This document shows, piece by piece, positions 37,080 to 40,649 of a stretch of DNA of 64,000 nt. Positions within the stretch are counted from its first letter, which is position 1. The number at the start of each line of letters is the position of its first letter. The position numbers were made by a program, and so were the translations under genes. Source of the stretch: Lenisia limosa (taxonomy: Eukaryota; Protista; Breviatea); NCBI GenBank assembly GCA_001655205.1, contig LPNZ01008880.1:1-64000 (forward strand), written 5' to 3'. Below the pieces are notes generated by a model. The model saw nothing but the letters and a program-made list of their open reading frames with translations, was not told where the DNA came from and searched no databases.

Positions 37080-38111
37080 ATGACTCAAGCCTCAGGAGTA
37101 GGTTAAAGACCCTTTATATTTAAATAATTGGTCATATATTATATTTTACGTCCTTTAAGGATCCTGAGGCGGCCAGAATGAATCGGCCTCCAAACTTTGA
37201 CTTCCCTACTCCACCTACTCCCCCCACAAGGAAATGGCTTAACGCTAAGAAGTGGTACCAATGGCCCAATCCTATTGGTATGTGGGATTCTCATCCTTCC
37301 GTGTCAACTTTTGATTTGCTAAGGGGCTTCTTCTTCTCCTCTCCTTCGTATTAGAAAGTCTAAACATAATAGCAGAAACTCCTGTGTTTTTTTTCATCTT
37401 ATAGACAACCGCCTTGTTCGATTGATCTCCTTCTTTGTGTTTCTTTCGGCATTGACTATCTTAATCTTTGGTGTCATTGGAGACAATGATGAGGTGTGGT
37501 ACCTTGTCCCCTTTCTCTTCTTTGACTTTTTTGTCCGCACCATTTTTGGCCCCGTTCCTTTCAGGTAAGAGCTGTTTGTTGGATTTCTATTTCTTCGGGC
37601 ATTTACATTTACCTGATCAGTCCACTTGGTGTTCTTTCTACCATTATTTTGAAGATCTTCCGCATCAAGACCATCATGGTTCCTTCTCCTGCAAAAAGGT
37701 TTGTTCTTTGAGAAGGTAATACCTTAGGTTCTCTGCCTTCCTGGGTATTGTGCTCAACACTGTCCTCTTCAACCTAAGGTTTACCCTTGACTCTGAGCTC
37801 CAAAGAGTGAGCCTTGAGATATTTATTACCCCCCCCCCCCCCNNNNNNNNNNNNNNNNNNNNNNNNNNNNNNNNNNNNNNNNNNNNNNNNNNNNNNNNNN
37901 NNNNNNNNNNNNNNNNNNNNNNNNNNNNNNNNNNCCGTTTTGGGCTTCTGTGTTGGCTGCTGGATTTTCGGAGCTTTCTTCAGATGGCGGTATGCAGTCG
38001 GTTTCACTGGCGCTGACATTGCAGTGACGCACGGGAGCTGAAAGGCTGCAAAAAGAAGCTGATCCCTCCGCCCGGTCCTGCAAAGAAGGGTGGAAACCTG
38101 GTTCGTGATAG
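37080..38111 (+). CDS. DUF4395-like multi-pass membrane domain (apparent N-terminal part of the TrxR gene)
   Basis: Spliced in frame: MTQASGDPEAARM...WYQWPNPIG...NRLVRLISFFVFLSALTILIFGVIG...LFFDFFVRTIFGPVPFSPLGVLSTIILKIFRIKTIMVPSPAKRFSAFLGIVLNTVLF...[gap]...VLGFCVGCWIFGAFFRW. The R..., DF..R...SP, P.KRF...G and GFCVGC pattern fits DUF4395 (PF14340) as recalled, not searched. Confidence 0.7.
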
Positions 38112-38181
38112 GTTTGCGCTTGGGTTAAAAAGTAATCAAGACTGTATTAGACCTAGAGTTCATAATAATACCAACCCTTAG

Positions 38182-40649
38182 AAAAGAGCCCGAATTCAAC
38201 CATGGCTTTGACTACGATCTGATTGTCATCGGCGGTGGCTCTGGCGGCATGGCTGCTTCCAAGGAGGCGGCTAGACTCGGTACGTCCTTCATCGTTGATC
38301 ATATGACCATATTTCACTCCTCACCTCTCAGGGCGCAAGGTGGTCGTACTGGACTATGTAACTCCCTCTCTTCAAGGCAAGGTTGGTTTTTTCTTTTACA
38401 ACATTTCACCCGTTAGACTTGGGGTCTTGGTGGTACGTGTGTGAACGTTGGATGCATCCCTAAAAAGCTGTATCACCAGGCTGCTCAACTTGGAATCCAG
38501 GTAATTCAGCAATAGCCCTCTTCTGATCTTTAGATTCACGAGCGTGCTTCCTACGGATGGGTTGGCGATGTCCGTGATGCAGTCAGGTCAACCAACAAGT
38601 TCTTTAAGAACACTGTAAGTACATCAACCCAGTATTCTTATATATCTCCAGGCAATTCAGCTTGGAGAAAAACAAGTCCCTATGTCTGAGAGCGAGAAGA
38701 GTGATTTGTTCAAAGAAGTGGAAGTAAGTAAATTCGTGGCATTTCGTTTAAATATTAGGTCTGTGGCTTAACCGACGAGAATTCTGAAAATGGAGGAAAA
38801 CGCTGCAAACCCACTCACCAATGGCCTGTACTCAAAAAAAACATCCTTCGTCACATTTCAAGCCTCAACCAAGGGTTTGGAAATTGTAAGTCCCTTACTT
38901 CGCAGCTATGTATCGTCCCTTCGCTCCCAAAAAGTCCAATACCTCAATGCCCTCGGCTCTTTTGTTGACAGTCACACCATTCGCGCTGAATACGGAAATG
39001 GCAAGCACAGCATCATTTCTGGGAGACGCATTCTCGTTGTAAGGGCATTATGCCTCTTTTGTGACTTCTAGGCTGTTGGTGGCCGCCCAAGAATGCCCAT
39101 TATCCCGGGTATTGAACACGCGATTTCCTCTGATGAGCTTTTCCATCTTGACGAATCCCCAAAGAAAACGTGAGTCTTTTCTCAAGTTTACGTTTCAGTC
39201 TTGTTGTTGGTGCGTCTTACATTGCTTTGGAATGCGCTGGATTCCTGACTGGATTAGTAGGCTTTTAGAGAGTTGACGTTGGCTGTTTTGAAGAACACTA
39301 ATGAGCTAGGGATGCGATACTCATGTCATGGTTCGTTCTAAGGTTCTGAGAGAGTTCGACCAAGAGTATGTTTGGATTTCTTGTGTTTTTGTTTAGATGT
39401 CTTCTCATCGATACAGTGTTGCTGAGCGGGTTGAGAAGGACATGATTGAGGAAGGAATCAACTTTATCCCCAAGTCTGTCCCGACCAAAATCGAAAAAAC
39501 TGATGGTAAGAATTGTACCACTATTCTTTTATAGTGAATTAGCTGGACTCAAGGTTTTTTACAAAAAATCCTCTGGTGACTCCGGTGAACAATCTGGTGA
39601 GAGTCCTATTTGCGGGTAGCATTGTTGACATTTCACAGAAGTTTTCGACACTGTTCTCTTTGCTATCGGTCGCACACCTTGCACCAAATCACTTGGCCTT
39701 GCGTGGGTTCTTTGTTGTTGGGTTTATGGAACAGGCAAGTTGGAGTCAAGACTGCCCCCAATGGAAAAATCTACTGCTACCACGAACGCACTACTGTTCC
39801 TCATATTTACGCAGTAAGCCCAAGGTAAACAGTTTCTTTGCTTAGAAGCTGAAACTGCTAATTTGCAGATGTAGTTTCAAGACAGTTCAGTCAATAGTTC
39901 CATTTGATAATATGACATTTTAGGTTGGAGATGTTGTCTATGGTGGCCTTGAACTGACCCCTGTCGCTATTAAGGCCGGTCTTCTCCTTGTCAAGCGCCT
40001 TTATTCCGTATGTTGCTTCAAGCTGAAGTGTTCTAACCCATCAGGTCGATCCTCACGGCCACTACGAGTACATGGACTATACCAATGTCCCTACCACAGT
40101 GTTCACCCCCCTGGAGTACGGCAGCATCGGCCTCAGTGAAACAGTCGCAAAGGAGTTGGTATACTGTTTTCATGGATATTTACTTCCAGGACATTCGGAG
40201 CCAGGAACCTGGCCATCTACCACGCTGAATTCACCCCCTTGGAATGGTCGATTGTTCCCTCGGGTCCTATCCGTCCCTGCTACGCGAAGGTTGGATGACA
40301 TTGTATTATTTTAACAATCAGATCATTTGCAACTTGATGGACAAAGAACGCGTGATTGGCTTCCACTACTTGGGCCCTAACGCGGGTGAAGTAACACAGG
40401 TGTGTTTCAACACCTTTTGAGTCTCAGTTGTCATCTATATTTATTTTGTCATTTGATATCCTAGGGATTTGGAACCGGATTCAAGCTTGGAATGACGAAG
40501 AAGGATCTTGATCGTGTCATTGGAATCCATCCCGTTTGTGCCGAAGAAATGGTGACCCTCAAGGTTGGTGTGATTTAAACCGCCACTTTACACTTCAGAC
40601 AACAAAGGACAGCGGAGTCAATCCCCGCAAGACTGGCTGCTGAGGTTAA
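38182..40649 (+). CDS. TXNRD: High-Mr (animal-type) thioredoxin reductase with C-terminal Gly-Cys-Sec-Gly
   Basis: [83 protein letters not shown] and [10 protein letters not shown]. Last exon reads ACA ACA AAG GAC AGC GGA GTC AAT CCC CGC AAG ACT GGC TGC TGA GGT TAA. Confidence 0.95.

Follow-up and report, generated by a model that had tools for sequence, protein, structure and literature searches.

We examined a 64,000-nucleotide (nt) stretch of the genome of the breviate Lenisia limosa (GenBank assembly GCA_001655205.1, contig LPNZ01008880.1, positions 1 to 64,000; hereafter the window), focusing on a plus-strand locus in which a membrane-protein reading frame of the DUF4395 family (Pfam accession PF14340) is followed by a selenocysteine-containing thioredoxin reductase (TrxR). 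The region is eukaryotic in character and carries many very short GT-AG introns. The two frames very probably form a single gene that runs from about 37080, or from the alternative start ATG 37178, to 40649 and encodes one polypeptide of about 760 residues. We favor an account in which a DUF4395 membrane domain, a basic linker and a selenocysteine TrxR make up one protein whose parts would be connected by an electron relay, and give this account as a whole a probability of roughly 0.78.

Reading frames and splice junctions at the DUF4395-TrxR locus

The start of the TrxR frame provides a first indication that the two parts belong together. The nearest upstream stop in this frame is a TAA at 38126-38128, and the first in-frame ATG (38250) lies past the GGGSGG FAD motif. 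The ATG at 38202 is off-frame and would give only MALTTI before a stop, and the interval 38042-38201 contains no ATG in any frame. These sequence features, which had been noted in a preliminary description of this DNA, all hold. We also considered ATG 37984 and ATG 37992 as TrxR starts and rejected them, since every plausible splice leads from them to a stop or to the wrong phase. The membrane-protein frame, which lies directly upstream on this strand, reads ..VLGFCVGCWIFGAFFRWR (37937-37990). Because the TrxR taken alone has no usable start codon, a single fused gene is the simpler interpretation.

To place the junction, we scored the region 37940-38215 with a splice-site weight matrix trained on 21 introns of two genes, most of them RNA-confirmed. 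The two best donors are 37990 and 38112 and the two best acceptors are 38024 and 38181. Both resulting introns are in phase 2, and the 87-nt exon between them contains no stop. A direct splice of 37990..38181 is likewise in frame. Frame agreement and an open 29-codon exon would by themselves be about a 1-in-10 coincidence, so the argument for the junction rests on comparative data.

Two orthologues provide these data. A search with the 54-residue DUF4395 exon identified P0002, a 724-residue protein of the breviate Pygsuia biforma (EukProt) that is encoded on a transcriptome contig by a single open reading frame (ORF) marked complete. P0002 has the order DUF4395, basic linker and TrxR, ends in ..KKSGC at a UGA, and matches PF14340 over the whole profile (69.4 bits), Pyr_redox_2 (195 bits) and Pyr_redox_dim (85 bits). 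The second comes from L002, an ungapped 29-kb metagenome contig of a closer relative that shares the gene order, exons, and intron positions and phases of the window. The L002 linker exon is exactly 87 nt long and encodes a segment identical at 18 of 28 residues (CKAKLIPAPGPAKK vs CKKKLIPPPGPAKK), with the nucleotide differences clustering at third codon positions; the flanking introns measure 102 and 241 nt in L002 as against 35 and 70 nt in the window. Splicing 37989 to 38025 places DARE directly after FFRWR, where P0002 reads FFIWKDAR.. (W(K/R)DAR in P0002, (L/M)RD.W in the rest of the family). The single ORF of P0002 and the colinear exons of L002 thus support the fusion that had been proposed from the window, and the 70-nt intron 38112-38181 proposed to join the frames proved to be the second-ranked splice pair, with an L002 intron at the same position and phase.

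Reads from this locus are present in one RNA run and one probable DNA run only. A 1828-nt RNA contig spans 38236-40877 and confirms the 19 TrxR introns (29-110 nt, all GT-AG), and a 305-nt RNA contig confirms the membrane-domain exons over 37177-37666. A DNA contig re-assembled from reads (depth 26), which possibly comes from the same sample as the assembly, is identical to the window over 37935-38272. It gives no sign of an extra T at 38202-38212, the change that the preliminary description had named as bringing ATG 38202 into frame. Because L002 carries the same off-frame ATGGCT, this ATG is not a start codon thrown out of frame by a sequencing error.

A run of Ns interrupts the DUF4395 region (Table 1). 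The DNA contig extends 76 nt into this run, where its final 30 letters encode ..VLTLFAFMES in frame ahead of VLGFCVGC. By homology, including the family alignment, the gap conceals only the 3' part of the intron whose donor is GTGAGC at 37807, plus about four codons (GPxx). Its flanks are consecutive parts of one domain, and the gap leaves the gene unbroken. The exon before the gap ends at the same residue in both species (DSELQR in the window, DSELQK in L002). Reading it on past 37806 into the poly-C tract, which gives a RVSLEIFIT segment resembling P0002, was rejected, as the L002 exon has the same end and the family alignment fits without the extension. In both species a poly-C tract immediately precedes the acceptor of the GxCxGC exon (window 37830-37842; L002 11541-11554). 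The poly-C run probably caused the assembly gap, and the estimate of 92 Ns may be too long.

Table 1. Features of the DUF4395-TrxR gene, in window coordinates.
Feature	Position	Strand	Evidence
Possible first coding exon (ATG; MTQASG)	37080..37097	+	In frame with exon 2 via GTAGGT..AG intron 37098-37159; no RNA support
Exon with cytosolic N-terminal motif PPNFDFPTPPTPPTRKW..WPNPI	37160..37277	+	RNA contig from 37177; splice 37277 to 37405
DUF4395 exon, membrane helices 1-2 (DNRLVRL..DFFVRTIFGPVPF)	37405..37564	+	RNA contig
DUF4395 exon (SPLGVLST..VPSPAK)	37621..37698	+	RNA contig to 37666; matches SPFG..VPS.AKR of homologues
DUF4395 exon RFSAFLGIVLNTVLFNLRFTLDSELQR after 29-nt intron	37728..37806	+	Frame and GT-AG; L002 counterpart ends at same residue, DSELQK
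Intron start (GTGAGC.., poly-C 37830-37842) and assembly gap 37843-37934	37807..37934	+	DNA contig, L002, family alignment
End of DUF4395 exon with invariant GFCVGC cysteine pair	37935..37989	+	Pfam profile positions 115-128; C141 and C144 invariant in alignment
GT-AG intron, 35 nt, phase 2	37990..38024	+	Top donor and acceptor of region; L002 intron at same position and phase
Linker exon, 87 nt, DARELKGCKKKLIPPPGPAKKGGNLVRD, basic, predicted cytosolic	38025..38111	+	L002 87-nt exon, 18/28 residues identical
GT-AG intron, 70 nt, phase 2	38112..38181	+	Second-ranked donor/acceptor pair; L002 241-nt intron at same position and phase
TrxR part, 20 exons and 19 introns of 29-110 nt	38182..40649	+	1828-nt RNA contig; fused-TrxR clade
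Candidate SECIS-like hairpin, non-canonical, 3' untranslated region	40794..40858	+	GUGAC, 10-bp helix, loop CCACUGUUUACAA, UGAG; inside RNA contig

Prokaryote-style or naive eukaryotic gene calling would divide this gene and end it prematurely at the UGA. Upstream of the gene, identical 36-mers and 31-mers at 29313-29405 and 32205-32297, about 2.9 kb apart, suggest a direct repeat.

Properties of the two domains and their fused relatives

The RNA-supported spliced model of the reductase contains the GGGSGG FAD motif, the CVNVGC motif and, in the dimerization domain, the His-Glu dyad GIHPVCAEE. Pyr_redox_2 matches the first TrxR exon piece in Pfam searches, and Pyr_redox_dim matches two exon pieces, both under its cut-off (19.5 and 21.9 bits). 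The protein ends in Gly-Cys-Sec-Gly (TGC TGA GGT TAA, 40638-40649), with the selenocysteine TGA at 40641-40643, and this GCUG ending is kept in five loci (the window, L002, L018, L019 and L020). The glutaredoxin domain (Pfam accession PF00462) matches neither the window pieces nor P0002, while thioredoxin glutathione reductase (TGR)-type hits of the same search carry it. An exon-encoded insertion of about 55 residues follows YGW (window 38560-38800) and lies in the RNA contig; other members of the fused clade have shorter insertions at the YGW site.

The Rfam selenocysteine insertion sequence (SECIS) model has no match in the window or in three orthologous mRNAs, and a crude pattern scan (ATGA..AA..GA) gave chance-level hits. 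The candidate hairpin in the 3' untranslated region differs from canonical elements in that its apical loop starts with CC, not AA. It has a counterpart in L002 (18107-18195) with the same GUGA/UGAG core and CC loop start, and the L002 helix differs at most positions yet is fully paired, a pattern of compensatory changes. The remaining 3' untranslated regions of the window and L002 do not align as a whole.

Single exon pieces of the membrane domain fall under the Pfam cut-off for PF14340 (18.4 and 13.1 bits against 24.5). The higher score comes from exon 37405..37564, which covers profile positions 2-44 and is 51% identical to P0002 and 70% identical to P0001/L002. When X stands in for the gap, the spliced N-terminus of the window protein has a score of 65 bits on a hidden Markov model of nine Pfam-verified bacterial DUF4395 proteins, and 200 shuffles of the same sequence reach at most 2.6 bits. 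This profile search of the spliced N-terminus against bacterial members confirms the DUF4395 assignment made in the preliminary description. In an 18-sequence alignment that extends from bacteria to the fusions, the cysteine pair of GFCVGC (37943-37960) is invariant, and the full set of invariant residues comprises R21, F57, R60, S69, P70, K94, G101, E135, G139, F140, C141 and C144. Because the cysteine pair, E135, R21, R60 and K94 are kept from bacteria to the fusions, their conservation argues that DUF4395 keeps a chemistry of its own and is more than a mere anchor.

An AlphaFold2 model of the Pygsuia domain (predicted local distance difference test score 83; predicted template modeling score 0.73) consists of four long helices and one short helix, and the hydropathy of the window model agrees with a four-helix bundle. 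The final helix has the cysteine pair at its N-terminus and runs as a Trp/Phe/Lys-rich segment into the linker. The model matches DUF4395 models in the AlphaFold DB and the ESM Atlas with template modeling scores of 0.6-0.7. Searches of PDB structures returned only generic four-helix bundles (Foldseek, none at E <= 0.001; VIA-align, Z <= 9.7), and an ESM Atlas search with the 54-residue exon was uninformative. The charge pattern, with Lys/Arg-rich segments before helix 1 and after helix 4 and an acidic first loop, predicts that the membrane domain has both termini in the cytosol and that the TrxR lies there too. In this topology GFCxGC would lie at the junction of the last membrane helix and the cytosol, surrounded by invariant Arg, Lys and Glu residues. 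All of the invariant residues are predicted to lie at or near the cytosolic face, an arrangement that favors chemistry at the inner leaflet over a cross-membrane relay.

Structural matches also revealed the DUF4395 fold in other protein contexts. In the AlphaFold DB and the ESM Atlas it is joined to glutaredoxin, thioredoxin, ThiS or RGS domains in proteins of other eukaryotes and of bacteria (A0A7S3XMR9, A0A2V0PFY0, A0A7S1LSH0, A0A7S0BBC5 and A0A482SNB2; Atlas rows 2-4). One of these, the unnamed 868-residue UniProt entry A0A482SNB2, may be another TrxR fusion. Across 15 bacterial DUF4395 loci, the neighboring genes show only genus-level patterns, namely Rrf2 with a cysteine-synthase-like pyridoxal phosphate enzyme in Geothrix and a PIG-L deacetylase in two Acidimicrobiales. 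Many actinobacterial DUF4395 proteins (L003, L004, L006, L007 and L008) carry a second, soluble CxxC in a tail after the last helix, for example PEEVCAEC. The position of this tail is that of the linker in the eukaryotic fusions, which lack the CxxC. The actinobacterial motif may act as a shuttle cysteine pair.

We next used the TrxR part of P0002 as a query for the wider family and inspected the best 120 hits for PF14340. Ten further PF14340-bearing proteins were found among them, eight full-length (732-867 residues) and two fragments, all from mRNA-sized environmental contigs of 2-3 kb (JGI, Logan and ENA) and none from NCBI or UniProt. The three source contigs inspected all end in TGC TGA GGC TAA, and one has a poly-A tail. 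All fused proteins share an N-terminal PNFxFP..R.W motif (the PPNFDFPTPPTPPTRKW..WPNPI motif of the window is kept in every fused eukaryotic homologue), the segment GGFCVGCWFF..FF.(L/M)RD.W.LR.DY after the last helix, and a GC(U)G end. Word-based homologue searches with the Pygsuia DUF4395 part returned the query itself or nothing, as the divergence of the domain is too great for exact-word matching.

A quick maximum-likelihood tree built from 87 TrxR cores groups the window protein with 10 of 11 other fused proteins in one clade (Shimodaira-Hasegawa-like approximate likelihood ratio test support 99), which also contains one N-terminally truncated sequence. The architecture thus defines a eukaryotic family that is conserved and has a TrxR clade to itself. 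P0030, a 615-residue fragment with a fused-type N-terminus and a TrxR core that groups with unfused TrxRs, was considered as a second origin of the fusion and rejected; its contig is probably chimeric, with the junction in the conserved GGGSGG region. Because the fused TrxRs form one clade, the fusion probably arose once and was retained in at least two eukaryotic lineages, one of them the breviates. The mRNA-like contig of the fused protein P0010 opens with ..ACAGTTTCTGTACTTTATTG (L018 1-41), followed by an ATG. We take this opening to resemble a euglenozoan (kinetoplastid/diplonemid) spliced leader, which suggests a euglenozoan source with a complete 5' end. P0006, P0007 and P0009 contain a cysteine-rich insertion (CExC...CxLC) in the helix 1-2 loop, on the predicted non-cytosolic face; three other fused homologues have two cysteines in this loop and the breviate proteins have none.

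A possible electron path and its alternatives

In high-molecular-weight TrxR/TGR enzymes, electrons pass from NADPH to FAD, to CVNVGC, to the Cys-Sec tail of the partner subunit and then to the fused N-terminal redox domain. A head-to-tail dimer of the fused protein could operate by the same logic. Electrons would flow from NADPH through FAD and CVNVGC to the flexible Gly-Cys-Sec-Gly tail of the partner subunit, and from the selenocysteine tail to the cysteine pair of the tethered DUF4395 domain. This pair, at the cytosolic surface of the membrane, would take the place of the TGR glutaredoxin. We give slightly better than even odds to the DUF4395 pair being a built-in substrate of the reductase. 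The relay outlined in the preliminary description, which was to move reducing equivalents to or across a membrane, is accordingly narrowed: delivery to the membrane is favored by the apparent cytosolic position of the invariant residues, and delivery across it is not. More speculatively, the reduced membrane dithiol might act on a thiol- or sulfur-type substrate at the cytosolic leaflet. The fusion partners and neighbors of DUF4395 elsewhere point loosely to such substrates, and our confidence in any particular end acceptor is low.

Several observations weigh against the favored account. Left unspliced, the DUF4395 frame stops normally at TGA 38039-38041, 17 codons past the last helix. No RNA contig of this organism covers 37667-38235, which leaves the junction introns without a direct view, and the RNA word depth of the DUF4395 exons is 7, compared with 14 for the TrxR, a twofold gap that could reflect 3' bias or a second transcript. 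The assembly gap blocks reading of the whole frame from the window alone. At the protein level, the topology derives from a predicted orthologue model and simple hydropathy, and to our knowledge DUF4395 proteins are all biochemically uncharacterized. None of 15 bacterial DUF4395 loci has a thioredoxin or TrxR neighbor; the thioredoxin and sulfur-gene neighborhood mentioned in the preliminary description finds weak support only in the thioredoxin, glutaredoxin and ThiS fusions of other organisms. The stop codon, the missing bridging contig and the depth difference would suit two separate genes, with the DUF4395 frame ending at its TGA and the TrxR starting at a non-AUG codon or at an ATG that misassembly has removed near 38202, where the existing ATG has a good context and would be in frame given one extra T. 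We nevertheless consider two genes very improbable, given that the depth-26 DNA contig agrees with the window across this interval, that L002 shares both the off-frame ATGGCT and the intron-exon plan, that DAR.. after the 35-nt intron and the entire linker exon are conserved as protein, and that the orthologous mRNAs are single ORFs. Isoforms with and without the linker exon are conceivable within the fused gene, as two phase-2 introns around an exon whose length is a multiple of three allow the skip 37990..38181 to keep the frame. Conservation of the exon as protein in L002, and a similar or longer linker in every homologue, make such alternative splicing rather unlikely.

If the fusion is accepted, DUF4395 might still be merely an anchor for an ordinary TrxR that reduces soluble thioredoxin locally, with the cysteine pair off the electron path. 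No assay ties DUF4395 to redox chemistry, redox enzymes are often tethered to membranes by unrelated anchors, and the bacterial neighborhoods would fit this reading. A simple anchor, however, would need no invariant GFCxxC, E135, R60, K94 and SP across bacteria and deeply diverged eukaryotes, nor would it account for independent fusions of DUF4395 to glutaredoxin, thioredoxin and ThiS or for a dedicated fused-TrxR clade with a conserved linker and N-terminal motif. We therefore regard the anchor reading as unlikely, while giving it some weight. Electrons might also pass through the membrane, as in DsbD/CcdA, to a target outside the cytoplasm or in an organelle lumen. Transfer across the membrane was raised by the preliminary description and could draw on the 2-4 extra cysteines that several fused homologues have in the first loop, which is predicted to lie outside. 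The window protein and P0002 have no cysteines in that loop, however, and the invariant residues all map to the predicted cytosolic face. Together with the weak evidence that no structural match to DsbD, CcdA, DsbB or VKOR was obtained, this makes a cross-membrane route quite improbable.

A full-text literature search found nothing on a DUF4395-TrxR or membrane-bound TrxR architecture, an absence that is not proof. The earlier statement that no such architecture is described thus stands for the literature, whereas public sequence collections already hold it, unremarked and from other organisms too. If the favored account of a fused membrane reductase is true, the Lenisia protein would be the first integral-membrane high-molecular-weight TrxR and, after TGR, the second natural fusion of an N-terminal redox partner to a selenocysteine TrxR. 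Such a fusion would serve DUF4395, a membrane family of unknown function that is widespread in bacteria and eukaryotes, as a "Rosetta stone" by pointing to cytosol-driven thiol-disulfide chemistry, with which the glutaredoxin, thioredoxin and ThiS fusions elsewhere agree. As a tentative proposal, to which we give a little less than an even chance, DUF4395 may represent a new class of membrane-embedded thiol-disulfide or sulfur-relay module. The protist fusions would then be self-contained NADPH-driven membrane disulfide reductases, with the selenocysteine tail feeding a pair at the inner surface, for substrates without a known reductase of this kind; membrane-associated persulfides, low-molecular-weight disulfides and thiophilic metalloids are speculative examples. 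The system is directly testable, with NADPH as input and the state of the membrane cysteine pair as output. The locus also indicates that anaerobic breviates retain selenoprotein machinery, with an unusual candidate SECIS.

Comparison with known redox systems

The reductase part resembles TXNRD1/2-type enzymes, with about 50-57% identity within the family and shared GGGSGG and CVNVGC motifs, NADPH-binding and dimerization domains, His-Glu dyad and GCUG end. It differs from them in having about 220 additional N-terminal residues that include four membrane helices, in the roughly 55-residue insertion after YGW, and in the window gene's non-canonical candidate SECIS with its GUGA core and CC apical loop. 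The membrane part shares the invariant R, F..R, SP, KR, G, LE and GFCxxC elements with stand-alone bacterial DUF4395 proteins. The latter, however, are 145-215 residues long and lack a reductase, and many actinobacterial ones add the PEEVCxEC tail, whereas the eukaryotic fusions add a conserved N-terminal PNFxFP. The basic linker that connects DUF4395 to the TrxR in the fused protein is about 35 residues long.

DsbD/CcdA, DsbB and VKOR provide another point of reference. Like DUF4395, these are small helical membrane domains, with cysteine pairs that trade electrons with thioredoxin-fold partners, and bacterial VKOR also occurs fused to its own partner. We obtained no sequence match or significant structural match to them, though a weak or missing match is not proof of a different fold. 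Their active sites are exposed to the periplasm or lumen or work with quinone, whereas the conserved residues of DUF4395 appear to be cytosolic. The mercury system offers a parallel that we draw as an analogy only. MerT is a membrane protein with a cytosol-facing cysteine pair, and MerA is a flavoprotein disulfide reductase with a mobile C-terminal cysteine pair that belongs to the same reductase superfamily as TrxR; the two proteins are separate, not fused.

The closest functional parallel is TGR, as represented by mammalian TXNRD3 and the flatworm enzyme. Both TGR and the fused protein are high-molecular-weight selenocysteine TrxRs with a Gly-Cys-Sec-Gly end and an extra N-terminal domain that carries a cysteine motif, although here the partner is a four-helix integral membrane DUF4395 domain (GFCxGC) instead of a soluble glutaredoxin (CPYC), and the TrxR falls in a separate clade. 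In TGR the mobile selenocysteine tail is known to reduce the fused N-terminal domain, and by analogy TGR offers the best model for the working of the DUF4395-TrxR fusion. The fused protein, which has no glutaredoxin domain, would thus work like TGR without being a member of the TGR group.

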